DNA of 64,000 bases from Macrostomum lignano (lineage: Eukaryota): positions 671,335 through 735,334 of the forward strand of contig NIVC01000033.1 of assembly GCA_002269645.1 (NCBI GenBank). Direction: 5' to 3'. Both the position numbers and the translations under genes were made by a program. Below are positions 385-43,573 of the stretch, piece by piece. The notes under the pieces are model-generated. The model ran no database searches, was not told where the DNA came from, and saw only the letters and a list, made by a program, of their open reading frames with translations. Numbering within the stretch: position 1 is the stretch's first letter; each line of letters begins with the position of its first letter.

Positions 385-1425
385 TTAAGTAGGTGTGATT
401 AACTTGTCGTCTAGCTGACCCCAAGCGTTGTGAATATTAGCTTGGCATATCCAGTAGGCTACACGCTGCCTGCAGCGCAATGCACCTTGTGAGACAAGCT
501 GCGCTTGCAGGGATATTGAGGTAGCCTCATCGAAAAGCAAGCGCAACAGTACATAAAATTGCAGCTTGCCACGTCCAGCTTTGCCGTTCAAGCGCCTGTT
601 GTAGCTTTCCATATCATTTTTTGTTCGGATTGACTGATCGAAGACACTGATATTCTCCGGAGTCCACATGGCGTTTGAAAGCCAAGTGCTTCGCACATAG
701 GCGCATAGCTCGATGAGGCGATTGTCACCTTGATCAACCTGAAAGGAATTATATATGTACATGTACATATAATAGGGTACATGTCCCTTTTATAATTTAT
801 GCTTACATTGCTGGTCTCTAAATTGTTGAAGACTGAAATAATATTCACAGTCGGTAAGTAGTATAAGGCCATTAGCCTCTGGCAAAAGCTGTATGTCATT
901 TCGTCACGGTTGTAAGACTCTTGGAGACCAAGGGCCTGGATTTTTCTAAATACAGCCTGTGTCCAATGAAAGCTGCAACCAATGACCCGACTTTGGGGGA
1001 AAACTTGATGTGCTGCTTTCCATGCTGTGGCTTCGTAATCCATAACAAAAACTGATGGGTTCACCTCAGGCAGGATGTCTCAAAGGGCTTGAAGATAGGA
1101 CTTATTGTCCTTTGAAGTTCAATCGGACATAAGGACAAACGCCAATGGCACCTGTAGTATGAGCTTCATCAGCTGTTTTAGCAGCACCTTCATCGGCAGC
1201 TTCATCGGCATCGGCAGCTTCATTGGCATCAGCAGCTTCATCGATAGCTGCATTGCATGCATTGCATGACCACTCAAAATGGTCAAGCAATTTCAGCTGC
1301 CTGTAGTGCACGCAACTTATATCAGTCTTACAAATTCTATTCTGCCACAGTTGACACTTGTTGCACTGCAAACCCTCTTGTCAAGGACAAACTTGTCTGT
1401 GGCACTCAACGCAGTTGTTATTCAT
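385..1425 (-). pseudogene. Internally deleted Mutator (MULE) transposase with N-terminal PHD-like finger
   Basis: From ATG 1425: NCVECHRQVCP*QEGLQCNKCQLWQNRICKTDIS...WSCNAC (PHD-like). Then VPLAFVLMS, VMDYEATAWKAAHQVFPQSRVIGCSFHWTQA and WTPENISVF..RTKNDMESYNRRLN, typical of MULE transposases. Stops and frameshifts are present and the central region is missing. Confidence 0.8.
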
Positions 1426-2448: not shown

Positions 2449-5400
2449 ATGGCGATTGTTTTTGACGGCTATTCAAGGGTTTACCCAGCCAGCTACTATG
2501 AGGATCCGAGCCTCACCGAGTTTTTCCACCGGATCGGCCTGTCGCTGGGAGAATTCGCCTTCAACTCAACCAAGTATCCGCATGACTACGCCTTCACGCT
2601 GCGGATGCTCCGCTCCTGGCGCCTTGTTGATGTGGGCGGAGCCGTCCTGCTTGCCGTGCTGTTCACTGCGCTGCGGTATGTCATCTCCGTTTGCTTTTCG
2701 TTGGTGAGTGGCCGACCGTCTAGCTGACTTCAGTGTCTGCATTGTGAAGCTTCACATTCTGCTGTAACATCGCGTCTAACTTTCCCAATCTCTAAACTTC
2801 TCAGAATCTCCAAACTTCAAAATCCCCATGCTTCACAATCCCCACTATCACTTCACGATCTCCATGCTTCACAACCCCATGGCCCCATTCTTCACAAACC
2901 CCATTATCACTTCACGATCTCCATGCTTCACAATCCCCATGCTTCACAATCCCCATGCTTCACAATCCCCATGCTTCACAATCCCCATGCTTCACGATCC
3001 CCATGCTTCACAATCCCCATGCTTCACAACCCCCATGCTTCATAATCCCCATGCTTCACAATCCCCATTATTACTTTACGATCCTCATGCTTCACAATCT
3101 CCATTGTCACTTCACAATCCCCATGCTTCACAATCCCCATGCTTCACAATCCCCATGCTTCACAATCCCCATGCTTCACAATCCCCATTATCACTTTACG
3201 ATCCCCATGCTTCACAATCACCATTATCACTTTACGATCCCCATGCTTCACAATCCCCATGCTTCACAATCCCCATGCTTCACGATCCCCATGCTTCACA
3301 ATCACCATTATCACTTTACGATCCCCATGCTTCACAATCACCATTATCACTTCACGATCCCCATGCTTCACAATCCCCATGCTTCACGATCCCCATGCTT
3401 CACAATCACCATTATCACTTTACGATCCCCATGCTTCACAATCTCCATTGTCACTTCACGATCCCTATGCTTCACAGTGCCCAAAAGTTCCACAACCTAA
3501 CAATATTTGCAATTTTTTATCACAAACTCTTAATTTTTATGCAGTCTCTTGTATAGCCCAGCTGTCTCATCTCTTCCCGGCCCCCCCCCTGTCTCATCTC
3601 CCATCCTCTCATGTCTCATCTCCTCCCGTCCCCCCTGTCTCATTTCCTCCCGTCCCCCTGTCTCATTTCCTCCCGTCCCCCTGTCTCATTTCCTCCCGTC
3701 CCCCTGTCTCATTTCCTCCCGTCCCCCCTGTCTCATTTCCTCCCGTCCCCCTGTCTCATTTCCTCCCGTCCCCCTGTCTCATTTCCTCCCGTCCCCCTGT
3801 CTCATTTCCTCCCGTCCCCTGTCTCATTTCCTCCCGTCCCCCCTGTCTCATTTCCTCTCGTCCCCCTGTCTCATTTCCTCCCGTCCCCCCTGTCTCATCT
3901 CCTCCCGTCCCCCTCTGTCTCATCTCCTTTCCCCTCCCGTTTCATCTCCCTCCCGTTCTTTCTTGTAAATCCAGCCACTGAAAAGGCAAGGCTCTGCTGA
4001 TCCATAACCCGTTGCTTTCAGCCCGTAGCAAACTGGCTGCAGATCCAGCCAGCCAGCAAGTTAAAGTGGCCGGAGTCAATCTGGAAATTCATCGCCTACA
4101 GCGGCTTGTGGCTCTACTCGCTCTACGTTGTGCTGCTCAGCGGTCGGTACGACTTTTTTCACAATCCTGTGGACATTCTGCGCGGAATCATCTTTGATGG
4201 TGAGCTTCTGATCTCATTGATTCTCACTCTGTCTTTGCCAGTCTCACCCTCTCCCAGTCTCACCCTCTCCCAGTCTCACCCTCTCCCAGTCTCACCCTCT
4301 CCCAGTCTCACCCTCCCAGTCTCACCCTCCCAGTCTCACCCTCCCAGTCTCACCCTCTCCCAGTCTCACCCTCTCCCAGTCTCACCCCTCCCAGTCTAAC
4401 CCCTCTTGGTTAACCATCACCCAGTCTCACCTCTCTAAGTCTCCCTCTCCCAGTCTCACCCCTCCCAGTCTCAACCTATCATTCTCACCCCTCCCAGTCT
4501 CACGCTCTCCAAGTCTCATCCCTCCCAGTCTCACCCCCTCCCAGTCTCACCCTCTCCCAGTCTCACCCCCTCCCAGTCTCACCCCCTCCCAGTCTCACCC
4601 CCTCCCAGTCTCACCCCCTCCCAGTCTCACCCCTCCCAGTCTCACCCTCTCCCAGTCTCACTCTCTCCCAGTCTCACTCCTCCCAGTGTAACCCCTCCCA
4701 GTCTCACCCTCATCCAGTGTCACCCTAACTCCTTTCTCAATCTATAAGTTAATGCAAACCTATAATTTTTACACCAAACCCAATATACAGGTAAGTATGT
4801 GCCTCACGTGTTTTCTCGCACACCATAGACCTCCGTCTTCGTACTTTAAACTCCCCAGGGCCACCTTCGCCCCTGTGCCCTATGCTCTGTCCCTATCACA
4901 CCACTGCACACAACCAGCAGGGGGGGGGGCGGGACTGTGCCTTCCGGCTTCCCCTTCCAGCCAGGTCCACCCTCTTTCAGCTTTCTACTCAATGTCTCTG
5001 GAGAGCTGCTCAGCCGTCTTATCTTAGAGAGCAGGAAATGCTCTGTAGAAGCCGCTGCTTGGCGCCAGGCCGCGCGCTCCAGTTGGCCCAGGGCGGTGAC
5101 CCCCCCCCTTTGTGGGTCAGAAATATTTGAAAGTTTTTTGAAATCTTGAATTTGAAATTTTTGAAATATTTGAAATTGAAATATTTGAAATCTTGAAACT
5201 TTTCATTGTACAACAATGGGGCTTTTCCATTACAGGAAAACACTAAGTTACAGGTCATCATATTGCAGGAGCATTTTCCCAAAAAATTGTGTGCTTCAGA
5301 AATAACGAAAAACCAAAAATTTGTAAAATAGCTAATTTGATTGCAAGCTTATTCAAAATGTGGTACAAATCCTCAAAATTGCTTATGGAATGCCACAAAT

Positions 5401-8400
5401 CGATACAATGTCCAACCATGATTAATTTAGTTTGAAAATATGTAGTTGCGCTTTGTCATATATATACACTATTTATACTGTCCTGCTCCTATAAGTTATG
5501 TTTAAGTTTAAGTAGCGATTTTTAACTGTGAACAAAACTACAACAGCTTAGAGGTGTATTTTTATTTTAACTTTTAAAAGATAGCATGTATACAAAGTCC
5601 AAAATAATAAATAGTGATAAAGAAGTGATAAAAGTTAATTAAAAGTCTTTTTATTTTCAACAACCAACTCGGAAAAAAAATTTGAAGGGTTCAAACCGTT
5701 GAAAATTAGAACAGCTAGACTATTGGCAAACTTTGAAATGGAGAAAAATGGAGAAGTTCAAAATAGATTCAAAGAAAAATTTAACTTGCTGCAACTGCGT
5801 AAATACTAACTAATGCAATTTTAATGGCTGAGCTGTAAAATGAAGAACTTACTATAAATACTACCCCTTGCGATTTGAATGCTGTAAAATGAAGGACTTC
5901 ACCTATCAATCTGATGAATATGTAATATTTATATACGATAAAATGCTGACAGAAAAGAGATATTTGGCAAAAATGAACCAAACTAAAGCTTTAACCAGCT
6001 TTAAAATTTAGAACACAAGTCAATTTGGCTTCAAAGTGGTGTAGCAGCTAAGATAAAGAGAAAACATAGAACAGTTTCAATTGACCAGCATATAAAAGTA
6101 CTTTGCTGAAAAATGCAGAAATTCTGCAACAGACAGGGGTCGTAGAACGAATCGCACAATGTTAAACAATTGGTGGTAAATAAGTAGCTTAAGAAAAAGC
6201 AAACAGTTTCAAGGTATCGTATTCAAAGCCATTAAAGCATAGTAGCATGCCAAACAAAGTGCTAATAAAATGACCATAGAAAATCAGCACAATAGTCTTA
6301 AAGCACACTGAATGCCCTAAATGTCATCCCAGCAATTTGAATGTCTGAGCTGTAAAATGAAGGACTTGCTATAAATGCCAATACCAACCCTGCTATTTAG
6401 AATGCCTGCTGTAAAATGAAGAACAGAACCAACAATATCAAGGGCAATTTGTAGGCTTTCACTTTGACTGCCGACTGCCGCCGGCTGTTTCGGCCTGGCG
6501 TTTCTTCGCTGCAGCCGACTGTCGACTCTTCGCTGGATTCGCTTGATCGGCGGCTGTTTCAGCGGGACGTTCCTTCGCTGCAGCCGCCTGTCGACTCTTC
6601 GCTGGGTTTGCTTTCGCTTGATCGACGGCTGTTTCAGCCTTGCGTTTCTTTGCTGCAGCCGCCTGTCGAGTCTTCGCTGGGTTCGCTTTCGCTTGATCGA
6701 CGGCTGTTTCAGCCTTGCGTTTCTTTGCTGCAGCCGCCTGTCGACTCTTCGCTGGGTTCGCTTTCGCTTGATCGACGGCTGTTTCAGCCTTGCGTTTCTT
6801 TGCTGCAGCCGCCTGTCGACTCTTCGCTGGATTCACCGTGTTTGACTTGTGAGATGCTGCCGCTGGACCTCGGACAAAAGCAAGGAATGCCTCCGGTCCA
6901 ACGATGTCCGGTTGCTGCATGTTGGCCAGACCAGAAATGATGCCACCAATCGCAAATCGTGCAGCCATGCTCATTGACTTCATTGTAGCTTGGTACGACT
7001 GGCGTGCAACATTGGGTTTGTGGCACAGTCGGATCGATACTGCCTTTTGTTGATTTTCGTCTAGGTACATTGCGGAGTACGTTTCAATGAATTTCCGATA
7101 GGCTGTATTAGTCACATGCTCGATTTTCGAATTCTTTGCTCGCTCCCTTGTCCATACCCTCGCAAAGCCACCCGTGCCAAGTGGGAAGAGCCTGTCAGTT
7201 GGTGAGGCCGTCTTTGCTCTCTCTTGAATGTAATTCGCGAGAATTTCGGCAACGCTGTCGACCGCAACTCTACAGGCGCCATACATGTTGGACGTCTTGT
7301 GCTCTTTAACGAAAAATTCGCTCTTCTGATCAGTCAGCCACTCAAGGCCTTCCTCAATGGTTGCATTAGTCGGAATGTCCGGCCTACTGGCGTTGCCATT
7401 CGAGAAGCACATTGAAGTGGTGATGCCAACAATGACGTCGTTGGACAAAATGTTTGATTCTGCAGCTGATTCTGCTCTAGTAATTAAGGAATGCACATGC
7501 GAGTGCAAACTTTCGACTTCTTCTGGCTTCAGTAATTCCTTATCGAGAACGTTCCGCAATCTGGCATCATTTGGCCGACGAACCTTAAGTCCATACGCCT
7601 TGGTTAGGCGCTTTAGACGCTCTTCGAACTCCAGAAGGTAGCATTTCAGGCCTAGATTCCGTAGTTCGACAAAACGGCGTGCTCGGAAAAACGAAACTAA
7701 ATGCGTTAACGCGTTGATGCATGATCGATCGGCTGATTTATTTCGCTTCGAGTCCTCCTCAACGAACGCGCTAACTTTATCACGAAACTCTTCAGTCAAA
7801 ATCGAAAGAAGGTCCGTCAGCCCACAAGCTTTAGCTAATCGAGACAGAGCATCAGTGTTCTTCCGAATCGACGACGCCTTAAGTCCGCCTCCTTCCCACT
7901 TTGGTAGCCACTTGGCCAAGTCTGAGAGCTCGACCTCCAGCAAAGTCGCCTCCTTTTTGGCATCAATGGACTTTTTAAGCGCATCAAATTTTTCCTGGGC
8001 TTTCTTGGCAGCAGCTTTTGCAGGCTTGTAGTAATGAAACCGCACACGATGGGCAGTCATTGAGCGCTTCTCAAACAGAACATCACAATCTGGGCACTTC
8101 ACCTTTCTGGAAGAGTCATCTTCAACCTCTTGCTGATTAAATACTTTGATCTCTGCAACCAGATCGTCTATATTCTTCGAGCCAAGAATATCTTTGTGGC
8201 TTTCGCGTAGATGTTGACGGATCCGGGAATGGAAAATTCCATGTTGTTGTCCCTCGGATTCCGATGGCTTCTTGAACGGGCAAATATAATTCACACCTCG
8301 CTGCTTCGATGAATTTTCCTTACCGGAAAAGGCTGCATTAGAAGAACCAGCATCAGCGGCATCGGCATCAAGATCAACAGCGGCATCGGCATCAAGATCG

Positions 8401-10733
8401 ACAACGGCAACATGACAACCAGCGGCGAGAATGGCATTTAAGTCTTCCTCGGAAATAGGGACCAGATGGTAATTGCCGTCCTGAAGAGTTCCATTTAGAT
8501 GTTCAGGCACAACGAACTCTTGCTGCTGCTGCTGCTCAGGTGGCAACGATGGTAGAGTTGGCGGGTTGCCAGAAACTGGGTCACTTGTCCTGCTGTCCGA
8601 GCCAACACTGGCAGGAGTTGCATTGTCCTTGGACATTTTCTTATGGCCTGCATCGAGGTTAGGATGAAGGTAAGATAAAATGTAATGAACATGATAGTCA
8701 GTGACTGCTAGCTATGAAAATATTTTCTTAAATAATAAATTTACATTACAGGGTATGCTTATGAAGCAATAGGATAATATATAGGTAAAGTAACCTTCCA
8801 TCAGCCATTTCTGCAATTTAACAGCCAACTGTGATTTGAAGTATCAGATCTGCAATTTAATGTCCCCTCCCTGCTGTGATTTGAGTCCTACTTAATCAGT
8901 CAACCTGCAAATATACTTTGAATTACAAAAAATGTATTTACCTAGAGAAGCAGTCAATTGCTGCTGTGGCTGCTGCTGCTCAGGTGGCAACGATGGTAGA
9001 GTTGGCGGGTTGCCAGAAACTGGGTCACTTGTCCTGCTGTCCGAGCCAACACTGGCAGGAGTTGCATTGTCCTTGGACATTTTCTTATGGCCTGCATCGA
9101 GGTTAGGATGAAGGTAAGATAAAATGTAATGAACATGATAGTCAGTGACTGCTAGCTATGAAAATATTTTCTTAAATAATAAATTTACATTACAGGGTAT
9201 GCTTATGAAGCAATAGGATAATATATAGGTAAAGTAACCTTCCATCAGCCATTTCTGCAATTTAACAGCCAACTGTGATTTGAAGTATCAGATCTGCAAT
9301 TTAATGTCCCCTCCCTGCTGTGATTTGAGTCCTACTTAATCAGTCAACCTGCAAATATACTTTGAATTACAAAAAATGTATTTACCTAGAGAAGCAGTCA
9401 ATTGCTGCTGTGGCTGCTGCTGCTCAGGTGGCAACGATGGTAGAGTTGGCGGGTTGCCAGAAACTGGGTCACTTGTCCTGCTGTCCGAGCCAACACTGGC
9501 AGGAGTTGCATTGTCCTTGGACATTTTCTTATGGCCTGCATCGAGGTTAGGATGAAGGTAAGATAAAATGTAATGAACATGATAGTCAGTGACTGCTAGC
9601 TATGAAAATATTTTCTTAAATAATAAATTTACATTACAGGGTATGCTTATGAAGCAATAGGATAATATATAGGTAAAGTAACCTTCCATCAGCCATTTCT
9701 GCAATTTAACAGCCAACTGTGATTTGAAGTATCAGATCTGCAATTTAATGTCCCCTCCCTGCTGTGATTTGAGTCCTACTTAATCAGTCAACCTGCAAAT
9801 ATACTTTGAATTACAAAAAATGTATTTACCCGGAGAAGCAGTCAATTGCTGCTGTGGCTGCTGCTGCTCAGGTGGCAACGATGGTAGAGTTGGCGGGTTG
9901 CCAGAAACTGGGTCACTTGTCCTGCTGTCCGAGCCAACACTGGCAGGAGTTGCATTGTCCTTGGACATTTTCTTATGGCCTGCATCGAGGTTAGGATGAA
10001 GGTAAGATAAAATGTAATGAACATGATAGTCAGTGACTGCTAGCTATGAAAATATTTTCTTAAATAATAAATTTACATTACAGGGTATGCTTATGAAGCA
10101 ATAGGATAATATATAGGTAAAGTAACCTTCCATCAGCCATTTCTGCAATTTAACAGCCAACTGTGATTTGAAGTATCAGATCTGCAATTTAATGTCCCCT
10201 CCCTGCTGTGATTTGAGTCCTACTTAATCAGTCAACCTGCAAATATACTTTGAATTACAAAAAATGTATTTACCTGGAGAAGCAGTCAATTGCTGCTGTG
10301 GCTGCTGCTGCTCAGGTGGCAACGATGGTAGAGTTGGCGGGTTGCCAGAAACTGGGTCACTTGTCCTGCTGTCCGAGCCAACACTGGCAGGAGTTGCATT
10401 GTCCTTGGACATTTTCTTATGGCCTGCATCGAGGTTAGGATGAAGGTAAGATAAAATGTAATGAACATGATAGTCAGTGACTGCTAGCTATGAAAATATT
10501 TTCTTAAATAATAAATTTACATTACAGGGTATGCTTATGAAGCAATAGGATAATATATAGGTAAAGTAACCTTCCATCAGCCATTTCTGCAATTTAACAG
10601 CCAACTGTGATTTGAAGTATCAGATCTGCAATTTAATGTCCCCTCCCTGCTGTGATTTGAGTCCTACTTAATCAGTCAACCTGCAAATATACTTTGAATT
10701 ACAAAAAATGTATTTACCTGGAGAAGCAGTCAA

Positions 10734-10766
<33 letters not shown>

Positions 10767-13700
10767 AGATGGCAGCAATGTTGGGGTCAGTCGTCTAGAA
10801 GTAGGTGCCAAGATAGTAGAAGTAGTAGACAAGACCTTTCTAAAATGTTGAAGTTATATATAGGACATTTAAAATCTATTGACTTGCATTGCATAGCCAT
10901 AGATATAGTGGTGCTTATCTATCTTAGTCACCTTATACAAGTTGCATTTAGTAGAGATCAGTTTATGCATCATAAAGTCCAAAATGGCATTATACATTAG
11001 GTGCAATGATGCCATGTGACATAATTTGCAGTGAAAATCTCAAGCCTTAACTCATGCCTATGCCCAATTGAATGCTAAATTTCAGAATAATAAAATAGAA
11101 AGAGAATACTTACTTGCCAACACAACCAATCCATGACTTGCCATTTTCGTCATTGTACATGACAAATGCACCTTTCTTGATTTTCCTACTTTCATTTTCT
11201 GACCCTGGAATGATTTGCAAATCCTCTTTAAACACATAATGGCATTCACCTTCAGTTTGGTCCTACCAGTAAACTAAAACTCGTGTTTTATGGCGATGAG
11301 CCATTGTTTTATCCTATTAGGATCGAATTGCTTCACAATTAGGTACTAGCCTGTAGGCCTAGTGTTCATGTTCTAGATAAAATCTGCAAGTGAAAACTTG
11401 TCTACCAAATGGCAGCAAATAAGAATAAACGAAAGAAATTTTAATTTAAAAAATTTTAGGTCAGTCTTTTCTAGCTAATCTGATAGTTCTCATTAGAACA
11501 AATGTTGGATAAAGATTTTTAATTTAACTGATTGGTCTTCATCCAGAGAAAATGAACTTTTTCTTTAATATATAATATTCTTTTTTTCCAAAAGCTTATT
11601 CGGTCACACTGTTTGTATTTGTCGCTACCACTATTTAATTTTCTTAATATCTAATTATCTACTTATTGTAGATAAGATTAATATATAATTGTAATTGATG
11701 TCATCGCTTTGCTTTATCTGGTTCTAACTGATTTGAAAAAAAAATTAAACGGTAATGAATTTATAAGGTTGTGGTTAAGATTAAAGAAAAGATTAAATGA
11801 GCAACCTGTCAGAACCATTTTAGTGCCTAAATATTAAGGCTTAATGCAGTTCGAAATCGAAATGAAACTTTTTTCTTTTTATGAAGAACTAGTACACACA
11901 GTTACGCACATAGGGTCAGTGGGCAGTGGGGCATACATTCTTGTAATTTATATTAGTCTAGTCGAATATGCAGCTATATCTAAATTCACTGAATCCACTA
12001 TAAATTCTAGTTGTCACTCTGTGGTATTAACTAAATTTGTATTGTGATAGCTTATTTAATTCTATAGTTTTAGACTAAAATAATAAAACTATATTAAACT
12101 TTGAATATTACTTGAATATTAAATTTCAAGAACTATATTTAAAACTAATATTAAACTTAAATTTTATATTACTTTGAATATTAAACTTTGAAACTATATT
12201 AAACTTTATACTTTGAATAATTTGGAAAGAATGTCTATAGTTTTAGACTAAAACTATAGAATTAAATAAGCTATCACAATACAAATTTTGTTTGGATTTT
12301 ATTGTTTTGATTAAGCAAACATGGAAGAAACCATTCTGCCAATTTGGTATATATATAACTGCAATTACTACTGCATATATTGCATTTCATTTTGTAAATT
12401 AAACTGATATAAAATCAAGTACAAGTTTCAGTTACCGGAATTTACCCAATTCCGGTAAATTAATGCCTTTCTGTACTTTGATGCCTGTAATCTGGTGCTC
12501 ATCTTTAATTTGAAGACAGAAGCTAAAAATTCCTATATCTTTTGAATAAAATGCAACTATGATCTTAAATTACAGTAGGTGATAGATCTATAGCAGTAGG
12601 CACGATCAAAGGGGTTTTCAAAAATCTGTAATTTAAAGCCTTTCTGTGATCTAATGTGCACCTGTAATTTTATGCTAAACTCCTGTAACCCTGCGCCAAT
12701 CTGTAACGATTTGGAAAGGATGGGGCCTACATTGGAATCTCGGCTTGGCTCTGCTCGTGCAATTAACACCATTAAAGGCCAACCTCCAAGGCACGGTGAA
12801 GTGTACATGCATAAACAGAAATAAACTCAGAGCCGCTGTACACTCCCGTGTGAGTGTGTGCCTGCTCAAGGAAGTCGATGAAATAGGCAGCAATGCCTCT
12901 CGCCGGTTGTGTGGCAATATTGTTTGAAGTGCGCCAGGGTGCGCACAGCCGCTGCCTCTAAAAGTAGTATTAGGAGAGCTCAACACTCTGAATTTATGCC
13001 CACTTTCCTAAGATTTTCTTTCTATTCAAAAAAATGGGGAAACCATCTTCGAAAAACTTGATCAGTTGTTAGAACTTACTGTATTTTGCACTGCTTGCGG
13101 CTAATTTCCTTTCTCGTCCCCCTTTCATTCCCGTCACTCCCTTCTCTTTCCCTCCACTCTCTTCACTTTTCCGTCACTCCCTTGTCTTTCCCTCCACTCT
13201 CTTCCCTTTTCCGTCACTCCCTTGTCTTTCCCTCTACTCTCTTCCCTTTTCCGTCACTCCCTTGTCTTTCCCTCTACTCTCTTCCCTTTTCCGTCACTCC
13301 CTCCCTTTCCCTCCACTCTCTTCACTTTTCCGTCACTCCCTTGTCTTTCCCTCCACTCTCTTCCCTTTTCCGTCACTCCCTTGTCTTTCCCTCTACTCTC
13401 TTCCCTTTTCCGTCACTCCCTTGTCTTTCCCTCCACTCTCTTCCCTTTTCCGTCACTCCCTCCCTTTCCCTCCACTCTCTTCACTTTTCCGTCACTCCCT
13501 TGTCTTTCCCTCCACTCTCTTCCCTTTTCCGTCACTCCCTTGTCTTTCCCTCTACTCTCTTCCCTTTTCCGTCACTCCCTTGTCTTTCCCTCTACTCTCT
13601 TCCCTTTTCCGTCACTCCCTCCCTTTCCCTCCACTCTCTTCACTTTTCCGTCACTCCCTTGTCTTTCCCTCTACTCTCTTCCCTTTTCCGTCACTCCCTT

Positions 13701-16700
13701 GTCTTTCCCTCTACTCTCTTCACTTTTCCGTCACTCCCTCCCTTTCCCTCCACTCTCTTCACTTTTCCGTCACTCCCTTGTCTTTCCCTCTACTCTCTTT
13801 CCTTTTCCGTCACTCCCTCCCTTTCCCTCCACTCTCTTCACTTTTCCGTCACTCCTTTCGTTTTCCCTCCACTCTCTTCACTTTTCCGTCACTCCCTACC
13901 TTTCCCTCCACTCTCTTCCCTTTTCCGTCACTCCCTTGTCTTTCCCTCTACTCTCTTCCCTTTTCCGTCACTCCCTCCCTTTCCCTCCACTCTCTTTCCC
14001 TTTCCCGTCACTCTTTCCTGTCCCATCATTCAATTTTAGCAGTTCTCAAACCTTACTCTGTGCACCTGAACTCTATCATTGCGCAGAAAACTACCTGGAG
14101 AAGCCGCTGCCATCGGACATTTACTGGATGTACGCCCTGCAGCTGGGATTTTATCTGCACTCCGTCTACGCAACACTGTTCATGGACGCCTGGCGCAAGG
14201 ACTCCATCATGATGCTGTTCCATCACGGCCTGACCATCTTTCTACTTGAGTTCTCTCTGCTAATGAAGTGAGCAATGAGACAGTTGGGAGTTTGGTCTGC
14301 TGCATTTAAACCAATGCCACTCAATTTACTCAACTTACGAATTTTCAGGTACTACAAAACCGGGGCGCTGGTGCTGTTCCTGCACGATCTGAGCGATATA
14401 ATTCTGGAGTTCACCAAGATCAACGTGTACCTGAAGGACAGGGGCAAAAAGTTTTTCCTATTGAATGAGTGGCTCGCCAACATTGGATTCGTTATCTTCG
14501 CCTTTAGCTGGTTAGTTTTATCAGCTAGCGTGTGCGCTAGCCTATGGAGTTGCTCTACACTGTTCTTAGAGTTCCAGAGAGCCTGACTCAGATTGGAGAG
14601 TTCTAGGTGTGCCTGACTCAACATGGAGAGTTCCAGGTGTGCCTGACTCAATATCGAGAGTTCCAGGTGTGCCTGACTCAATATGGAGAGTTCCAGGTGT
14701 GCCTGACTCAACATGGAGAGTTCCAGGTGTGCCTGACTCAATATCGAGAGTTCCAGGTGTGCCAGACTTAACCTGGAGAGTTCCAGATGTGTCTGACTCA
14801 ATATGGAGAGTTCCAGGTGTGCCTGACTCAACATGGAGAGTTCCAGGTGTGTCTGACTCAATCTGGAGAGTTCCAGGTGTGCCTGACTCAACATGGAGAG
14901 TTCCAGGTGTGTCTGACTCAATATTGAGAGTTCCAGGTGTGTCTGACTCAACATGGAGAGTTCCAGGTGTGTCTGACTCAATATCGAGAGTTCCAGGTGT
15001 GTCTGACTCAACATCGAGAGTTCCAGGTGTGTCTGACTCAACATCGAGAGTTCCAGGTGTGTCTGACTTAACCTGGAGAGTTCCAGATGTGTCTGACTCA
15101 ATATGGAGAGTTCCAGGTGTGCCTGACTCAATATGGAGAGTTCCAGGTGTGCCTGACTCAACATGGAGAGTTCCAGGTGTGCCTGACTCAATATCGAGAG
15201 TTCCAGGTGTGCCTGACTCAATATGGAGAGTTCCAGGTGTGCCTGACTCAACATGGAGAGTTCCAGGTGTGCCTGACTCAATATCGAGAGTTCCAGGTGT
15301 GCCAGACTTAACCTGGAGAGTTCCAGATGTGTCTGACTCAATATGGAGAGTTCCAGGTGTGCCTGACTCAACATGGAGAGTTCCAGGTGTGTCTGACTCA
15401 ATCTGGAGAGTTCCAGGTGTGCCTGACTCAACATGGAGAGTTCCAGGTGTGTCTGACTCAATATTGAGAGTTCCAGGTGTGTCTGACTCAACATGGAGAG
15501 TTCCAGGTGTGTCTGACTCAATATCGAGAGTTCCAGGTGTGTCTGACTCAACATCGAGAGTTCCAGGTGTGTCTGACTCAACATCGAGAGTTCCAGGTGT
15601 GTCTGACTTAACCTGGAGAGTTCCAGATGTGTCTGACTCAATATGGAGAGTTCCAGGTGTGCCTGACTTAACCTGGAGAGTTCCAGGTGTGCCTGACTCG
15701 ATATGGAGAGTTCCAGGTGTGTCTGACTCAATCTGGAGAGTTCCAGGTGTGCTTGGCTCAATCTGGAGAGTTCCAGGTGTGCTTGACTCAATCTGGAGAG
15801 TTCCAGGTGTGCTTGACTCAATCTGGAGAGTTCCAGGTGTGCCTGACTCAATCTGGAGAGTTCCAGGTGTGCTTGACTTAATCTGGAGAGTTCCAGGTGT
15901 GCCTGACTCAATCTAGAGAGTTCCAGGTGTGTCTGACTCAATCTGGAGAGTTCCAGGTGTGCTTGACTCAACATGGAGAGTTCCAGGTGTGCTTGACTCA
16001 ATCTGGAGAGTTCCAGGTGTGTCTGACTCAATCTGGAGAGTTCCAGGTGTGCTTGACTCAATATCGAGAGTTCCAGGTGTGTCTGACTCAATCTGGAGAG
16101 TTCCAGGTGTGCCTGACTCAACATGGAGAGTTCCAGGTGTGCTTGACTCAATCTGGAGAGTTCCAGGTGTGCTTGACTCAATCTGGGGAGTTCCAGGTGT
16201 GCTTGGCTCAATCTGGGGAGTTCCAGGTGTGCGTGACTCAACATGGAGAGTTCCAGGTGTGTCTGACTCAATATTGAGAGTTCCAGGTGTGTCTGACTCA
16301 ACATGGAGAGTTCCAGGTGTGTCTGACTCAATATCGAGAGTTCCAGGTGTGTCTGACTCAACATCGAGAGTTCCAGGTGTGTCTGACTCAACATCGAGAG
16401 TTCCAGGTGTGTCTGACTTAACCTGGAGAGTTCCAGATGTGTCTGACTCAATATGGAGAGTTCCAGGTGTGCCTGACTCAATATGGAGAGTTCCAGGTGT
16501 GCCTGACTCAACATGGAGAGTTCCAGGTGTGCCTGACTCAATATCGAGAGTTCCAGGTGTGCCAGACTTAACCTGGAGAGTTCCAGATGTGTCTGACTCA
16601 ATATGGAGAGTTCCAGGTGTGCCTGACTCAACATGGAGAGTTCCAGGTGTGTCTGACTCAATCTGGAGAGTTCCAGGTGTGCCTGACTCAACATGGAGAG

Positions 16701-19169
16701 TTCCAGGTGTGTCTGACTCAATATTGAGAGTTCCAGGTGTGTCTGACTCAACATGGAGAGTTCCAGGTGTGTCTGACTCAATATCGAGAGTTCCAGGTGT
16801 GTCTGACTCAACATCGAGAGTTCCAGGTGTGTCTGACTCAACATCGAGAGTTCCAGGTGTGTCTGACTTAACCTGGAGAGTTCCAGATGTGTCTGACTCA
16901 ATATGGAGAGTTCCAGGTGTGCCTGACTTAACCTGGAGAGTTCCAGGTGTGCCTGACTCGATATGGAGAGTTCCAGGTGTGTCTGACTCAATCTGGAGAG
17001 TTCCAGGTGTGCTTGGCTCAATCTGGAGAGTTCCAGGTGTGCTTGACTCAATCTGGAGAGTTCCAGGTGTGCTTGACTCAATCTGGAGAGTTCCAGGTGT
17101 GCCTGACTCAATCTGGAGAGTTCCAGGTGTGCTTGACTTAATCTGGAGAGTTCCAGGTGTGCTTGACTCAATCTAGAGAGTTCCAGGTGTGTCTGACTCA
17201 ATCTGGAGAGTTCCAGGTGTGCTTGACTCAACATGGAGAGTTCCAGGTGTGCTTGACTCAATCTGGAGAGTTCCAGGTGTGTCTGACTCAATCTGGAGAG
17301 TTCCAGGTGTGCTTGACTCAATATCGAGAGTTCCAGGTGTGTCTGACTCAATCTGGAGAGTTCCAGGTGTGCCTGACTCAACATGGAGAGTTCCAGGTGT
17401 GCTTGACTCAATCTGGAGAGTTCCAGGTGTGTCTGACTTAATCTGGAGAGTTCCAGGTGTGCCTGACTCAACATGGAGAGTTCCAGGTGTGTCTGACTCA
17501 ATATCGAGAGTTCCAGGTGTGTCTGACTCAACATGGAGAGTTCCAGGTGTGCTTGACTCAATCTGGAGAGTTCCAGGTGTGTCTGACTCAATCTGGAGAG
17601 TTCCAGGTGTGCTTGACTCAATCTGGAGAGTTCCAGGTGTGTCTGACTCGATTCCGAGAGTTCCAGGTGTGCCTGACTCAGTTTGGAGTATTCCATGTTC
17701 GCTAGGCTGAACCGGTATTAAGAGTGTAGTTGCCTACTTGATAATATATATAAAAGGCGAAAATATCGGATACTACTGCTGACAGTAGGCTCGTTAACGC
17801 ACATGGTTACTGCTATTCATACACGGCTTTTTATTTTCTTTTAACAGGGCCTGGTTCCGTCTGTATTGGTTTCCGCTGAAGGTGCTGTACCCCTCCCATT
17901 GGAGCGTGTACCTGTACCATCAGGGCCGGGACCCTAAGATGTTCGTCTTCTTCAATTCGATGCTGTTCGCTTTGCAGATTCTCCACATCTACTGGTTTTA
18001 CGTGAGTCTCTGTTTACTACTTATGTGACGATTAGTGGCATATTTACATCCCTTTGTAGGCGTTTGATATGTACCCAATCAAATCACCTCCCTCCCTACT
18101 TTCTTCATCACCTCCCTCCCTACTTTCTTCATCACCTCCCTCCCTACTTTCTTCATCACCTCCCTCCCTACTACCTTGATCACCTCTCTCTACTCCCTTT
18201 ATCACCTCCCTCCCTACACCCTTCATCACCTTCCTACTCCCTTCATCACCCCTACTACCTTCATCACCTCCCTACTCCCTTCATCACCTTCCTACTCCCT
18301 TCATCACCCCTACTACCTTCATCACCTTCCTACTCCCTTCATCACCCCCTACTACCTTCATCACCCCTACTACCTTCATCACCTCCCTACTCCCTTCATC
18401 ACCTTCCTACTCCCTTCATCACCCCTACTACCTTCATCACCTTCCTACTCCCTTCATCACCTTCCTACTCCCTTCATCACCTTCCTACTCCCTTCATCAC
18501 CCCCTACTACCTTCATCACCTCCCTACTCCCTTTATCACTTTCCTACTCCCTTCATCACCCCTACTACCTTCATCACCTTCCTACTCCCTTCATCATCCC
18601 CTACTCCCTTCATCACCTCCCTACCTACACCCTTTGTCACCTTCCTACTCCCTTCATCATCCCCTACTCCATCACCTCCCTCCCTACACCCTTCATCACC
18701 TTCCTACTCCCTTCATCATCCCCTACTCCATCACCTCCCTCCCTACTCCCTTCATCACCCCCTACTACCTTCATCACCTCCCTACTACCTTCATCACCTC
18801 CCTACTCCCTTCATCATCCCCTACTCCCTTATTGCATACTCGTTTCATTATCTCTTGCTCTCTTCATCACTTACACACTTCATCACCTTTGTACTTGCCT
18901 CGCCATCTCCCAGCCCTATCACTCATCCGCTTCCCCCATCCCAATTTGCCTCCTATCGCCAGCTCCTCTCTCCCCGCCGCCCGCAGTTTATCGTCCTGCT
19001 GCTGGTTCGCGTTGCCACCGGCACGCAGCGCGAGATCGAAGACACTCGCGAATACGAGGAGGCCGAGCGCCACCGCCGGCTGAACGGCCACCAGGAGTCT
19101 CCGAGCGGCGATGACGCCAGCCAAGATGGCGCCGCAACGTCTATTCGGCACCGGACGAACAAAGACTAG
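2449..19169 (+). CDS. CERS1: Ceramide synthase, CerS1/Lag1-type (TLC domain, no Hox domain), 370 aa from 6 exons
   Basis: Exons 2449-2703, 4022-4199, 14087-14267, 14349-14510, 17848-18001 and 18987-19169. All are GT-AG with consistent phases (1113 nt). Lag1p motif RKDSIMMLFHHGLT...GALVLFLHDLSDIILEFTK; also KWPESIWKFIAY and WFRLYWFPLKVLY. Confidence 0.93.
2822..3480. repeat. Tandem repeat, ~16-bp unit ATCCCCATGCTTCACA (CerS1 intron 1)
   Basis: Directly visible periodicity. Confidence 0.9.
3560..3950. repeat. Pyrimidine-rich tandem repeat, ~24-bp unit CCCCCTGTCTCATTTCCTCCCGT
   Basis: Directly visible periodicity. Confidence 0.9.
4238..4735. repeat. Tandem repeat, 16-17-bp unit CCAGTCTCACCCTCTC (CerS1 intron 2, 5' end)
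   Basis: Directly visible periodicity. Confidence 0.9.
6459..8647 (-). CDS. Large terminal exon encoding two zinc fingers plus a tyrosine recombinase (Crypton-like) domain and a basic C-terminal repeat (725-aa ORF from ATG 8636)
   Basis: Zn fingers ICPF...QHLRESH and KCPDC...AHRVRFH. YR motifs in catalytic order: NASRP (R, 7383-7385), EHKT (K, 7296-7298), TAYRK (R, 7095-7097) and LCHKPNVARQSY (H 7020-7022, Y 6993-6995). Splice acceptor AG just upstream of 8647. Confidence 0.8.
6490..6830 (-). repeat. 75-bp coding tandem repeat (25-aa NPAKSRQAAAAKKRKAETAVDQAKA)
   Basis: GCTGGGTT recurs at 6601, 6676 and 6751. Confidence 0.9.
8520..10740. repeat. 444-bp tandem array (~5 units), each unit = 150-nt exon + 294-nt intron of the YR gene
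   Basis: Identical ATG context at 8636, 9080, 9524, 9968 and 10412. Confidence 0.95.
12033..12288. repeat. Perfect 41-bp inverted repeat (small foldback/MITE-like element)
   Basis: 12033-12073 AAATTTGTATTGTGATAGCTTATTTAATTCTATAGTTTTAG is the exact reverse complement of 12248-12288. Confidence 0.8.
13120..14020. repeat. Pyrimidine-rich tandem repeat, ~40-bp unit (CerS1 intron 2, 3' end)
   Basis: CCGTCACTCC recurs every 36-40 bp. Confidence 0.9.
14575..17695. repeat. 30-bp satellite (~100 units, GAGAGTTCCAGGTGTGCCTGACTCAATATG) in CerS1 intron 4, with higher-order structure
   Basis: Exact 30-bp period; the diagnostic variant GCCAGACTTA occurs at 14761, 15301 and 16561. Confidence 0.95.
18085..18830. 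repeat. CT-rich degenerate tandem repeat (~20 bp, CCTTCATCACCTTCCTACTC), CerS1 intron 5
   Basis: Directly visible periodicity. Confidence 0.85.
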
Positions 19170-19499
19170 TGCAATTGGTGCATGCTCGGGCTTGTGCTTT
19201 GTGCTATATTCTTGTTCTCTTAGGCACTGTCCGCTAGTTCACTGTTGGCGCTGTGCTGAATCACCGAGTTTCATCAACAAGAGAGAAACTTCCTTCTGGT
19301 TCGAATTGCTCCACTCCGCTTCCCGCTTCCAAATTAAAGCCTGCTTCCCTTGATTTATCGCTTATTTTTTGCTCTTATCTTTTGACTTGCTGCTTGCGTT
19401 TGTCCTAGCGAGCTTTGTTATTCTATTAACCAACTGTTGAATTGGCGGCCTGGGTCTTGGGGTTAATTGATTTTCTTGTTGTTATTTGCTTTTCTGCAG

Positions 19500-20275
19500 A
19501 GATTGCCCCTGAACTGAACCCCCGATCGCCCCTGAACTGAACCCCCGATCGCCCCTGAACTGAACCCCAGATCGCCCCTGAACTGAACCCCCGATCGCCC
19601 CTGAACTGAACCCCAGATCGCCCCTGAACTGAACCCCAGATCGCCCCTGAACTGAACCCCAGATCGCCCCTGAGCTGAACCCCGATCGCCCCTGAACTGA
19701 ACCCCAGATCGCCCCTGAACTGAACCCCAGATCGCCCCTGAGCTGAACCCCGATCGCCCCTGAACTGAACCCCCGATCGCCCCTGAACTGAACCCCAGAT
19801 CTCCCCTGAACTGAACCCCAGATCGCCCCTGAGCTGAACCCCGATCGCCCCTGAACTGAACCCCAGATCGCCCCTGAACTGAACCCCAGATCGCCCCTGA
19901 ACTGAACCCCAGATCGCCCCTGAGCTGAACCCCGATCGCCCCTGAACTGAACCCCAGATCGCCCCTGAACTGAACCCCGATCGCCCCTGAACTGAACCCC
20001 CGATCGCCCCTGAACTGAACCCCCGATCGCCCCTGAACTGAACCCCAGATCGCCCCTGAGCTGAACCCCAGATCGCCCCTGAACTGAACCCCAGATCGCC
20101 CCTGAGCTGAACCCCGATCGCCCCTGAACTGAACCCCAGATCGCCCCTGAACTGAACCCCAGATCGCCCCTGAACTGAACCCCGATCGCCCCTGAACTGA
20201 ACCCCCGATCGCCCCTGAACTGAACCCCCGATCGCCCCTGAACTGAACCCCAGATCGCCCCTGAGCTGAACCCGA
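19500..20275. repeat. Tandem repeat, 22-23-bp unit GATCGCCCCTGAACTGAACCCCA
   Basis: Directly visible periodicity. Confidence 0.9.
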
Positions 20276-25229: not shown

Positions 25230-28200
25230 CACAGACCAATAAGTATAACTAGACTGCGCGTGTGGGGCAAGAAATGTGTGCCTCTTTCCAAGTAGGAAAA
25301 ATGGCACCCCAGCTCCCACCCCCTCACGATCGATATTTTTGGCTTCCTTTCCCTTCCAACCCTTCTGTCATTGGGCCCGCTGTATTAATTGTTGCCTTTT
25401 GCCATGGAACACGGATTGCTAACCATTTAACCAACTTTATGTGCAACTAGCAATTTAACAGTTTAAATCTAGTATTATTTTTCGATTTATTAAAAACTAA
25501 AAAACCGTACAAAAACGCTTGCAGACAAAATGAGACCTTTTTGTTGTTGCTGATAGCATAGAAGCAGTAATAAAAGTATATAAATAGCTCACCTGGTTTC
25601 GAATATACTATAGATTAAGAAATATCGCTGCTCGAAGTAGTCTCTGCCTCCTTCCTGGTCTTCTTCCTGAGCGAGAAAGTTCTTTAGCTAGTTTTTTCAT
25701 TCTGATCTTTATGAAGAGCCCAGCCATGACTGGAATTAAATGGAGCTTGTGCGACTCAATGCCGCTGCTTGCGGATGCCGAATGCGAGTCAAGCTCAGGG
25801 AATAGATTGCTCGACATGCGCAAAGTCTCGTGAACTGCTACGTCACTAGAGAATTGGCTGTTATAGCTGGCACGTCAAATAACAGACTCAGCACTGAGCA
25901 GCACACGGAAGACATCGCTGCTGGGAAAAATCAAGCCGCCAGTTCCTTCCTTGTTCAAAACATTCTTCAAGGCAACAAGTGAGCAAGGGGCACGAAAAGC
26001 TGGTGGCGTCTCGGAGCTGGCAGTCAGAGCTGACCTGCACGTAGCACATTCGACAACTTTCAACATGCTTCGCACAACTGCTCCGGCAATATAGTACACA
26101 ATAGACTGGCAAATCTCACAATTAGATGCATTCATGCAGTGCTGGATGGATTCAAGACTCAGTCCCATATCATTCTGAACTTTCATCTTCCACTGCTTCT
26201 GTGCTGATTCAGCTGATGATGGTAGGCATGACAAGGACAGTTGAATGGTGGCATCCTGCTGCTTCACATTCGGGCTGACAGACTGGAGAATCCCACCTCC
26301 GGCATGCACCAGCAGCTGCCTAAATGCCGAGTGAAACTGCTTTGGTGTCGGGTTGTGGTTCTAGCCATTTCGAAGCCTGACTGCATTAAAGAATAGTTCT
26401 AGAAAGTCCTGAGACAGCTTGTAAGTGCAAAGAAAGAAGAATTTGCCAGTTGAAAATAAATACTTGGCAAGCACAATAACGGCATGGCAATTGGTGATGA
26501 AGCCTAAAAATCCTGTCTTCTTTGCAGTGTCAACGATTTTGCATCTAGCTGGAGTTTCTAAGCTCTTGAGAAGCTGGATCGAGTCAGTGAAGAAGTCAAT
26601 CCAGTCAGACTGGTTGTCAGCTCTTAGAGCCATTTTAGCCCCATAATTTACCAGTCGCTTCGAGTTGAACGCATCGAACAGATCATTGATGTGCTCAATA
26701 AAATCTGCTGTCACTAATACATCGGAATGATCAAATCCGGCCAAGCCTTGCTTGTGCACCCATCGTAATGAGTCAGCCACCGACTTACTAAAAAGTTGTG
26801 AGGCCAAATAAACTTTCATCTTTAAATTAGCAAAGTTAATGTGATGCCTGCTCAGCTTATTGCCCAGTCTGAGTCCATGGCTCTCCTGTACTTGCTGCAA
26901 CATGCACACATATTTCCAATCAATATTTCCTCTGTCCGGCCAAACAAATGTTCCCAGGGACTGCCACTGGTTTCGAATCAGCTTCAACATGTGCGGCACA
27001 TCCAAGAAGGCTGAAACCTGAATGCCGGGATCGCAGGGGTGTGGGAAAGAGGCAACTATCTTATTGGGAGAGCTTATTCTGGCACCAAGAAGCTCGATCG
27101 CTCAAATATTGTGCTGAGTCCCATCGCATGTAAATGATGAGGCAATAACGCCAACCTGGTAGAGCCGCTGGATTGATTCCTCTACGACACTTGAAAGAAA
27201 TTCGCCATCAACTCCGCTCACTAGAAAATATCCTAAAGGTAGCTTCCAATAGCTCTTGAGACCCACTGCCATCACTACCAATGCTGAAGTTGCCTCCTGA
27301 TCAGTTGACTTGCCATCGCCTTTGTCAACATAGCCAAAGAAACTGCCTTCATTTGAATTCCACTCAACCATCGCTTCCAGTGACATTTCATCAGCTACAA
27401 CGTTGCAGTAGTCGAAGGATCGGTCATCATTGGAGCTGCGTCGCCGAGAAAGTTCCTGAAAGGCTTGGTCACAAAATCCTGGAAGGCATTTCGCATTCGA
27501 GAGCCATCTTCTAAGCGAAGCTGGATGCGGAAGCTGAAAGTACTGTCTCACATACGCATAGGCCTTCGGGCTGTAAAAGTGCAATGTGGAGGCGAATTTC
27601 CGCACTTCGTGGGAGAATATTCTTGTCCTCTTGGTAATCTTGCTTGGCAAAATGCTGCTAAGCAGTGAATCGGAGGTCAAGAAATTCAGCCGAGATGCAG
27701 CAGCTTCATTCAAAATACATTTGGCCCTTAACTCTCGAATCACATCTTTCAGGGTCTTGGCTCTTTGTTTAATTTGCCTATGCTTTGAGCGCAGTGATCG
27801 AATTTTGCGGTACTTGCTCTGGAGCGACCGCCTTAAGATTTCAACAGCCTTTGCACTTTTCTTGAACCGGCTATGAGTAGATAGAAGCCTTCTGTATCTG
27901 CGCCGAAGATTTTTAAGTGCTCTCACCTTCTTGTCGAATTCTTCTCTGGGCACGCAGTTAACATGGATGTCCGGTCCAGGATCTTCATCTTCCTTGGCAG
28001 CCACTGGAGCTTCCGGCTCGCTGCTCTCTGTTGATTTACAAAATGCAGCGAAATCAACTTCGCGAGCTGCGGCCGCGGTGGCAGTCTTCCGTTTCTTCTC
28101 AGCTTTCGGCTGCAGATGGTCAGGGAACGCCGGGAAGATGGAAGGAACGGCATTTGGATATAGCCGTCTTTTGACGCTAGGCAGAAAGCCTGCAAATTGC

Positions 28201-43189: not shown

Positions 43190-43313
43190 CACTCTGTCTC
43201 TCTGTCTGTCTGTCTGTCTGGCTGTCTGTGTGTCTGGTCTTTGTTTCTCTGTCTGTCTGCCTGTCTGTCTGTCTGCCTGTCTGTCTGTCTGTCTGTCTGC
43301 CTGTCTGTCTGTG

Positions 43314-43378
<65 letters not shown>

Positions 43379-43498: not shown

Positions 43499-43531
<33 letters not shown>

Positions 43532-43534
43532 TTC

Positions 43535-43573
<39 letters not shown>

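Follow-up and report, generated by a model that had tools for sequence, protein, structure and literature searches.

What kind of gene lies antisense within an intron of a ceramide synthase gene in the flatworm Macrostomum lignano, and does it belong to the host or to a mobile element? The window analysed here, a stretch of 64,000 nucleotides (assembly GCA_002269645.1, contig NIVC01000033.1, positions 671,335 to 735,334 of the forward strand), contains a spliced gene for a protein with two zinc fingers followed by residues in the order expected of tyrosine recombinases (YRs). A sequence-only reading of the window had allowed for two alternatives, a Crypton-like element or a domesticated recombinase. 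The three copies, sharp identical ends and empty sites described below support the first of these and argue against the second: rather than a domesticated gene, positions 5216..12724 very probably represent one copy of a recently mobile DNA transposon of the YR-only (Crypton) type, autonomous and low in copy number.

Boundaries, copies and insertion sites of the mobile unit

The gene lies within 6459-11304, the extent first assigned to it, and is antisense to its host gene as had been proposed, with host exon 1 starting at 2449 on the plus strand and the next TLC-domain exons following from ~14100. The mobile unit is larger than that first extent and reaches from 5216 to 12724. The features that define it are as follows.

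5216..12724, minus strand: whole mobile unit of family 1, copy g2 (Mlig028483g2, L008), 7,509 bp
12720..12724, minus strand: 5' terminal core repeat CCCAT (ATGGG on the plus strand); a single TTCAT stands at this position in the empty locus L017
5216..5220, minus strand: 3' terminal core repeat CCCAT (ATGGG on the plus strand), preceded by the arm ...CTGTAATGGAAAAGC
12029..12292, no strand assigned: inverted repeat in the 5' non-coding region of the element, two arms of 57 nt, 93% complementary, around a loop of 150 nt; also in the other copies
2449..2700, plus strand: first exon of the host ceramide synthase (MAIVFDGYSRVY...), located upstream of the insertion; end approximate
14100..14583, plus strand: TLC-domain exons of the host gene, located downstream of the insertion; approximate coordinates

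Over 17 kb the window is 100% identical to L008 (NIVC01000033.1). The unit is 99.2-99.8% identical to positions 7691..15644 of locus L007 and ~8481..16907 of locus L001, with unrelated flanks, and 5216..12724 is the only part of the window that the three loci share. The three family-1 copies measure 7,509, 7,954 and 8,428 bp, are 99.5-99.9% identical outside an internal tandem array and have ends that coincide to the base in all three. The window copy is found in an intron of the ceramide synthase (TRAM_LAG1_CLN8) gene, g1 in a 17-kb intron of a UEV-type UQ_con gene and g3 near Miff. At both ends of each copy the terminal core co-varies, as CCCCAT, CCCAT or CCAT (4-6 bp). The divergence of 0.1-0.5% among the copies suggests ongoing activity.

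As the earlier reading had it for the neighbourhood of the gene, no open reading frame (ORF) for a reverse transcriptase (RT), Gag, Rep or DDE protein was found within the element in the ORF list, and no stop-free stretch of at least 90 aa was detected in the unit beyond the single gene, except in frames overlapping it; the same holds for the contigs of its relatives. All three copies contain the same introns. Since introns are kept in all copies and no RT is present, the unit appears to move through DNA.

Macrostomum lignano is neopolyploid and its assembly redundant (PMC5730564), and unoccupied homeologous loci were sought for this reason. They were retrieved by identity, with two exactly rebuilt proteins as starting points, one from a neighbouring gene (180 aa) and one from the UEV host gene (142 aa); a homologue search with the ceramide-synthase exon returned an unrelated 56-aa fragment only. 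The resulting empty and occupied sites read as follows.

Ceramide synthase locus, empty (L017): ...CCAATGTAGGC-TTCAT-TGTTGTGCAATG...
Ceramide synthase locus, occupied (window): ...CCAATGTAGGC-[CCCAT CCTTTCC ... GGAAAAGC CCCAT]-TGTTGTACAATG...
UEV locus, empty (L019): ...GAGTGG-CCCAT-CTAGTTC...
UEV locus, empty (L020): ...GAGTGG-TCCAT-CTAGTTC...
UEV locus, occupied (L007): ...GAATGG-[CCCAT ACTTTCC ... GGAAAAGC CCCAT]-CTAGTTC...

The search for further copies and empty sites that had been suggested as a check was thus answered by three copies and by precise empty sites at two loci. The homeologous flanks, 91-98% identical, have diverged much further than the element copies, and hence the insertions are recent, younger than the divergence of the duplicated loci.

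Two further observations concern the unit and its target sites. The core of the empty site differs among homeologs exactly at the insertion point (L017, ~3031..3035, TTCAT; L019, ~14007..14011, CCCAT; L020, ~13590, TCCAT), and the immediate flanks are nearly identical; these core differences could be single nucleotide polymorphisms or excision footprints. The inverted repeat at 12029..12292 may be a nested miniature inverted-repeat transposable element, or it may belong to the element as a regulatory or structural component.

Structure and transcription of the recombinase gene

A 725-aa ORF on the minus strand, 6459..8636, had been read as stop-free, and it is listed as such among the ORFs of the window. 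Near-identical copies of its protein are named "hypothetical protein BOX15_Mlig028483 g1, g2 and g3" in GenBank. Upstream of the ORF, exons with GT-AG borders keep phase through to the last-exon acceptor at 8647, and the gene is transcribed, as the GenBank models P0001 and P0023 were built from RNA-seq.

11114..11304, minus strand: exon 1, 191 nt, ATG at 11304
10718..10839, minus strand: exon 2, 122 nt, with a poly-Q run at its end; joined to exon 1 in model P0001
8525..10756, minus strand: 444-bp tandem array, 5.0 units, 99-100% identical
10423-10274, 9979-9830, 9535-9386 and 9091-8942, minus strand: 150-nt in-phase array exons, one per 444-bp unit, beside intron sequence
6459..8647, minus strand: last exon, with the 725-aa ORF inside (ATG at 8636, stop at 6459-6461)

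The six upstream exons that had been proposed have GT-AG borders and are in phase, but four of the six are identical copies within the 444-bp tandem array, each unit of which re-encodes the ATG and the first ~40 codons of the 725-aa ORF. The array consists of 5, 6 and 7 units across the three genomic copies of the element. The repeat exons are variably spliced in the RNA-derived models, with P0023 joining two of them in frame and P0001 skipping them. The presence of an expandable exon array inside a transposase gene, seen in the window, L007 and L001, is an observation in its own right, and the unit count could reflect long-read assembly error.

The ATG at 11304 had been joined in phase to the downstream exons; the phase is kept, but codon 14 of exon 1 is TAG (11265..11263) in the window copy and closes the frame there. 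The same codon is CAG in both L007 and L001, and for this reason translation in the family probably begins at the ATG at 11304, from which the window copy would give a truncated product. Internal ATGs of the window copy, such as that at 8636, could still give the finger-recombinase part of the protein, and in the remaining two copies the frame is open from the first ATG onwards. A reading of the TAG as a splice acceptor was considered and dropped because the frame of the other copies is open with CAG.

Domain organization and fold of the protein

The order of domains in the protein is a variable N-terminus, a CHHC-like finger, a C2H2 finger, a SAM-like core-binding domain, a tyrosine-recombinase catalytic domain and a basic repeat tail. 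Residues are numbered along the 725-aa ORF.

8196..8282, minus strand: zinc finger 1, CHHC-like (C119, H132, H142, H147), from ligand conservation and a modelled beta-beta-alpha unit
8034..8096, minus strand: zinc finger 2, classical C2H2 (C181, C184, H196, H201), ligands kept in 11/11
7530..7958, minus strand: all-helical N-domain, ORF residues ~227-369, counterpart of the SAM-like core-binding domain of tyrosine recombinases
6924..7529, minus strand: catalytic domain, ORF residues ~370-571, from the model, Foldseek and family conservation
7385-7383 (R418), 7298-7296 (K447), 7106-7104 (T511), 7097-7095 (R514), 7022-7020 (H539) and 6995-6993 (Y548), minus strand: catalytic residues
6479..6838, minus strand: C-terminal basic tail, 25-aa repeat NPAKSRQAAAAKKRKAETAVDQAKA x4-5, 75-bp period

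Both zinc fingers of the earlier reading are considered real because their ligands are conserved in all family members that cover them and beta-beta-alpha units are predicted by the model. Finger 1 is matched by Pfam zf-U11-48K in three family members (best E 8.6e-5), and finger 2 of the family profile weakly matches the BCL11A and CTCF fingers in the PDB. Pfam scans of the N-terminal region encoded by exons 1-2 gave no match. In the best local hhalign alignments the helical N-domain is paired with the core-binding domains of Cre, lambda Int and XerD, and a faint match to Phage_int_SAM_1 was also seen (E 0.3). The basic C-terminal tail had likewise been noted before and is built of the 25-aa repeat; it may serve in nuclear localisation or DNA contact.

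The AlphaFold model computed from a 20-sequence alignment has a mean predicted local distance difference test (pLDDT) score of 84.9, with 260 residues at or above 90; a single-sequence model computed without alignment was unusable (pLDDT 39.7). A structural comparison with the phage-integrase fold had been put forward as a check, and here the model matched. In a Foldseek search against the PDB the top match is XerA (5hxy; E 1.7e-3, prob 1.00), followed by the integron integrase IntI (2a3v) and by vaccinia and variola topoisomerase IB, and all non-recombinase matches have a prob of at most 0.06. Against BFVD, most of the top ~23 matches are integrases, tyrosine recombinases (one of a hytrosavirus) and VLF-1, mostly with a prob of ~1.0, and the rest are unnamed. 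The alignments are 350-380 columns long, indicating that the matches take in the helical N-domain as well as the catalytic domain. As far as a predicted structure goes, an integrase-type two-domain fold can be regarded as established.

The residues that the sequence-only reading had picked out, in NASRPD (R418), EHKT (K447), TAYRK (R514), LCH (H539) and QSY (Y548), are all found in this order, and they are conserved in the family: R418 in 13/15 members, K447 in 14/14, R514 in 15/15, H539 in 10/11 and Y548 in 10/10. Their spacing is close to that of known recombinases, with 29 residues from R418 to K447 (Cre 28), 25 from R514 to H539 (Cre 23, lambda Int 22) and 9 from H539 to Y548 (Cre 9, lambda Int 9), the tyrosine lying near the C-terminus of the domain. 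In the model K447 is placed between two predicted strands, and R418 and R514 are at helix starts. An hhalign comparison with a profile of XerD, XerC, Cre, lambda Int, FimB and FimE runs co-linearly across 193 columns and places K447 on XerD K172, but with an E of 0.0078 and a prob of 5%; a permissive local profile alignment places RLxH...QSY on LLGH270...Y279 of XerD, that is, H539 on H270 and Y548 on Y279. When the family profile was compared with the single Cre and lambda Int sequences, hhalign gave nothing significant, and its global mode was meaningless. The assignment of the putative active-site residues is well supported but not proven.

Relatives of the protein

When 1.84 billion representative proteins were scanned exhaustively with HMMER, only 22 relatives were identified; the named ones are all from M. 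lignano and the others come from short metagenome or SRA contigs. A word-indexed homologue search found only the protein itself, and its rerun with the family alignment found 2 proteins, low-complexity words dominating. The motifs GNAxR(P)D, HKT, (T/S)xxYRK, RLxH and QSY are strongly conserved among the relatives. One of these, P0014, is present on at least nine contigs from several environmental samples (L003-L006, ENA and JGI metagenome contigs, 3.8-5.1 kb). P0014 is intron-split and has the finger, SAM-like and YR order of the M. lignano protein, and an environmental eukaryote therefore carries the family as well.

A sister family and its predicted recombination site

A second, distantly related family of zinc-finger/YR elements is present in M. 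lignano. Its proteins, P0010 and P0025, are ~24% identical to those of family 1, are encoded by intronless genes and are 1090-1109 aa long; their C-terminal repeat is basic and unrelated in sequence to the family-1 tail.

7207..16582 of L009 (NIVC01000359.1): family-2 copy, 9.4 kb; the family-2 genes are Mlig000354g1 and Mlig002461g1
7191..17687 of L012 (NIVC01001526.1): family-2 copy, 10.5 kb

The neighbours of L009 and L012 differ, and the gap in length between the two copies is an internal tandem array that L012 has in addition. A boundary at 15984, taken from the comparison of L009 with L012, was replaced by 16582 on the evidence of the empty sites. Both insertions are flanked by CCCC, and the empty homeologous sites are ...TTTTTACGA-CCCC-GAAGG... 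in L021 and ...ACGA-CCC-GAAGG... in L023. In both families the 5' end begins with CCC, and ACAGATT is found at positions 21-27.

When the family-2 ends are joined via one CCCC, the sequence GTCATAAACGTGCC-CCTATA-GGCACGTTTATGAC is obtained, in which a 6-bp spacer separates two perfect inverted arms of 14 bp. The left arm lies 6 bp in from the terminus and the right arm is terminal. Among 5,000 random joins, none produced a 14-bp inverted repeat. Such a site fits the described layout of tyrosine-recombinase recognition sites (PMC3212892) and, judged by its sequence, the predicted joined site has the architecture of loxP, FRT and dif and is lox-like. The predicted circle junction of family 1 is ...TGGAAAAGC-CCCAT-ACTTTCCA..., with short arms, TGGAAA/TTTCCA (6 bp ungapped), and a gapped CTGTAA extension.

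Proposed mechanism and alternative explanations

We hypothesize that the recombinase binds both ends of the element, with the fingers and the core-binding domain recognising the DNA, and that Y548, helped by R418, K447, R514 and H539, would form a 3'-phosphotyrosyl link. The element would be excised as a circle in which the ends are joined via the short core, CCCAT in family 1 and CCCC in family 2, with inverted arms on either side. The circle could then recombine with a core-like genomic sequence of 4-5 bp, leaving the core at both junctions without a conventional target-site duplication. Such a course of events corresponds to the Crypton model and is the most parsimonious reading.

Several observations weigh against a Crypton-type transposon that moves in this way. 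The catalytic set had been called apparently complete, and R418, K447, R514, H539 and Y548 are indeed conserved, but the position of the HxxR histidine is occupied by T511, and by Thr or Ser in 13/15 members of the family (11 Thr, 2 Ser, 1 Arg and 1 Lys). The weak profile-profile alignments leave R418 and the T511-x-x-R514 box out of register, and the helix of the model that bears the tyrosine is of low confidence (pLDDT ~54-58). A profile match, also suggested as a check, was not obtained from any recombinase family in Pfam, PDB sequences, NCBIfam or PHROGs. In Pfam, where the whole protein and 20 members individually were scanned, 0/20 members match Phage_integrase (PF00589), DUF3504 (PF12012, CryptonA) or DUF3435 (PF11917, Starship) at E<=1, and six isolated catalytic domains gave nothing at E<=10. 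The copies seen, three of family 1 and two of family 2, are those among the retrieved loci rather than in the full genome. The family-1 inverted arms are not significant alone, the empty site of the ceramide synthase locus is TTCAT and not CCCAT, and a 4-5 bp flanking repeat formally looks like a target-site duplication too.

It is this last point that brings in staggered cut-and-paste, in which a DDE-type or other transposase would act in trans, CCCAT and CCCC would be target-site duplications, the inverted ends would be terminal inverted repeats (TIRs) and the recombinase-fold protein would be cargo or serve another role. Such an element would account for a 4-5 bp sequence found once in empty and twice in filled sites, as well as for inverted repeats at or near the ends, with perfect arms of 12-14 bp in family 2. 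However, three plus two independent insertions share the non-palindromic core of the element and not locus-specific duplications, the CCCAT repeats that flank the ceramide synthase insertion differ from the single-copy TTCAT of the homeolog, and the family-2 arms, one offset by 6 bp and the other terminal, leave a spacer and are not symmetric TIRs. Because the same non-palindromic core recurs at 3/3 and 2/2 insertions and the asymmetric arms give a spacer, YR recombination is favoured over a staggered-cut duplication. Furthermore, no other ORF is present, and two families that are ~75% different in protein each keep the YR as their only gene. We regard staggered cut-and-paste as unlikely and retain it because the insertions are few. 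Less likely again is a fragment of a larger virus-like or plasmid-like element with a VLF-1/integrase-type recombinase, a possibility raised by the nudivirus and baculovirus VLF-1 and the hytrosavirus tyrosine recombinase among the Foldseek matches; yet the VLF-1-type matches score no better than phage integrases, and the unit is bounded at 7.5 kb by empty sites and has no second gene.

A domesticated Crypton-derived host gene, acting as a DNA-binding regulator or as a host recombinase fixed at one locus, would explain why the gene is spliced, transcribed and annotated as an ordinary gene of low copy number, why its model survived an annotation pipeline that discards repeat-overlapping transcripts (PMC5730564), and why zinc fingers have been added, as in many domesticated Crypton genes (PMC3212892). 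It would not explain three copies, 99.5-99.9% identical, with sharp identical ends at unrelated loci, nor the precise empty sites in homeologs or the nonsense codon of the window copy; moreover, the nucleophile tyrosine and both arginines are kept, unlike in human DUF3504 genes (PMC3212892). We consider domestication highly improbable, and the same slight chance is given to a remnant or derivative of a YR retrotransposon (DIRS, Ngaro, PAT) without its RT. YR retrotransposons do encode a YR and occur in animals (PMC4157794), but no ORF for RT, RNase H, methyltransferase or Gag was found here, nor split direct repeats or long inverted terminal repeats; the introns shared by all three copies argue against an RNA intermediate, and the DIRS and Ngaro recombinases are assigned in the literature to PF00589, which the element protein does not match. 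Segmental duplication or assembly redundancy of the neopolyploid genome has the smallest chance of all: in the Mlig_3_7 assembly, blocks duplicated at an identity of at least 95% do add up to 180 Mb (PMC5730564), yet flanks would have been copied too and are instead unrelated, the breakpoints are base-identical, and the true homeologous flanks exist and lack the unit. The precise empty homeologous sites together with the unrelated flanks are what we take to exclude domestication, segmental duplication and assembly artefact, in favour of a mobile Crypton-type element.

A wider claim is made more hesitantly. The two M. lignano families and ~20 environmental relatives may form an undescribed deep lineage of eukaryotic YR DNA transposons that is still active, a proposal about which we are slightly more doubtful than confident. 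With equal reserve, we suggest as the hallmark of this lineage a protein that combines zinc fingers, a SAM-like domain and a YR with a T/S-x-x-R box and that is invisible to current recombinase profiles; its elements would carry lox-like sites defined by sequence, 14-6-14 in family 2 and with a CCCAT core in family 1.

Other features of the window

The remainder of the window contains further mobile elements, a host gene and repeats.

25875..28445, minus strand: P-element-like transposase with THAP, Tnp_P_element helix-turn-helix, TNP-like RNase H N, GTP-binding insertion and RNase H C regions; it is split over at least three ORFs and is for that reason interrupted by introns or stops
46512..52123, minus strand: BEL/Pao long terminal repeat (LTR) retrotransposon, apparently intact, with long open frames for gag (DUF1759, 611 aa) and for pol (Peptidase_A17, RVT_1, integrase; 1290 aa)
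38758..42092, plus strand: exons of a KH-domain protein gene amid several satellite arrays with 19-20-bp and 34-bp periods
588..1064, minus strand: 158-aa ORF (…FHWTQAVFRKIQALGL…) that looks by eye like a transposase fragment and has no Pfam match
2824..4726, 13131..14013, 14568..17695, 18083..20273, 43193..45864 and 53752..59823: micro- and minisatellites, exceptionally dense and with strongly skewed strand composition, in host introns and intergenic sequence

Among these satellites is a 30-bp unit with 104 repeats in the ceramide-synthase gene, and the arrays yield long spurious ORFs.

Significance

Among eukaryotic DNA transposons, Cryptons are the class that is least understood; their boundaries are hard to define and their copies few. 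Their circle-and-recombine mechanism has mostly been argued by analogy with bacterial elements. The window and the sister loci provide what is usually lacking: ends defined to the base, occupied and empty sites in two divergent families, young copies and a predicted arm-spacer-arm site. Microinjection and transgenesis are feasible in M. lignano (PMC5730564), and the proposed deep new lineage, if true, would for the first time make a Crypton-type system of an animal tractable by experiment and would offer a candidate for a new pair of site-specific recombinase and target. A whole recombinase lineage can apparently evade annotation based on hidden Markov models, being left as "hypothetical protein" and recognised only via predicted structure; the Mlig028483 and Mlig000354/Mlig002461 gene models are due for re-annotation as transposon genes. 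The antisense intronic insertions in the ceramide synthase and UEV genes are natural presence/absence alleles for effects on host expression.

Comparison with known systems

The YR retrotransposons of the DIRS, Ngaro, PAT and VIPER groups are set apart from the element, which lacks an RT/RNase H, a methyltransferase, Gag and split direct or inverted terminal repeats. The domesticated Crypton genes with DUF3504 (ZMYM2-4, QRICH1, KCTD1, KIAA1958 and WOC) resemble it in combining a YR-derived domain with zinc fingers in an animal protein. In the human domesticated DUF3504 genes the catalytic tyrosine, together with the second arginine, has in all cases been lost (PMC3212892). These genes occupy fixed orthologous loci, whereas the element is found at several loci, its presence is polymorphic between homeologs and the catalytic tyrosine and arginine are kept.

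With Cre/loxP, Flp/FRT and XerCD/dif the element shares a predicted helical core-binding domain and catalytic domain, the R...K...R...H...Y order at Cre-like spacing and, in family 2, joined ends with 14-bp arms around a 6-bp spacer, the classical layout of a core site. In contrast to these systems, its protein is eukaryotic, intron-containing and transposon-borne, has additional zinc fingers and has the first histidine replaced; the element apparently integrates at genomic cores of 4-5 bp and not at a full partner site, and no sequence similarity is detectable. The integrases of Tn916 and CTnDOT act through a circular intermediate at many target sites and with short or imperfect core homology. 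Elements of this type are bacterial; they carry an Xis and genes for conjugation, and PF00589 matches their integrases. A tolerance of imperfect core homology like that of Tn916 and CTnDOT would explain how TTCAT or TCCAT targets could recombine with a CCCAT core.

The closest known elements are the Cryptons (Goodwin et al. 2003; Kojima & Jurka 2011, PMC3212892), especially CryptonF and CryptonS with their terminal direct repeats of 4-6 bp. Cryptons are operationally defined by coding for a YR only, by the lack of long terminal repeats, by terminal direct repeats of 4-6 bp and by low copy number, with introns allowed (PMC3212892). The element shows these traits: a YR gene is its sole gene, it is a discrete unit with identical ends and empty sites, it has no long TIRs or LTRs, and its termini are CCCAT or CCCC. 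As in Cryptons, the short terminal direct repeats correspond to a single copy in the target, and two of the three family-1 copies start with CCCATA, containing CCATA, the reverse complement of TATGG, the terminus of most CryptonS elements. The element differs from known Cryptons in that its protein is matched by no recombinase family of Pfam, including DUF3504 (CryptonA, according to PMC13465315) and GCR1_C (CryptonF), and in that it has two N-terminal zinc fingers, a basic repeat tail and Thr or Ser in place of the histidine of R-H-R-Y. The CryptonA and CryptonI elements of animals were reported to be without terminal repeats (PMC3212892), which are present here, and Platyhelminthes, the host phylum, is absent from the reported hosts of Cryptons. 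We found no publication that links Cryptons or YR DNA transposons to Macrostomum, and a Repbase consensus could exist unpublished. Set apart from the known groups by Pfam proxies, the element is probably a new variant of the Crypton type that belongs to a new lineage.

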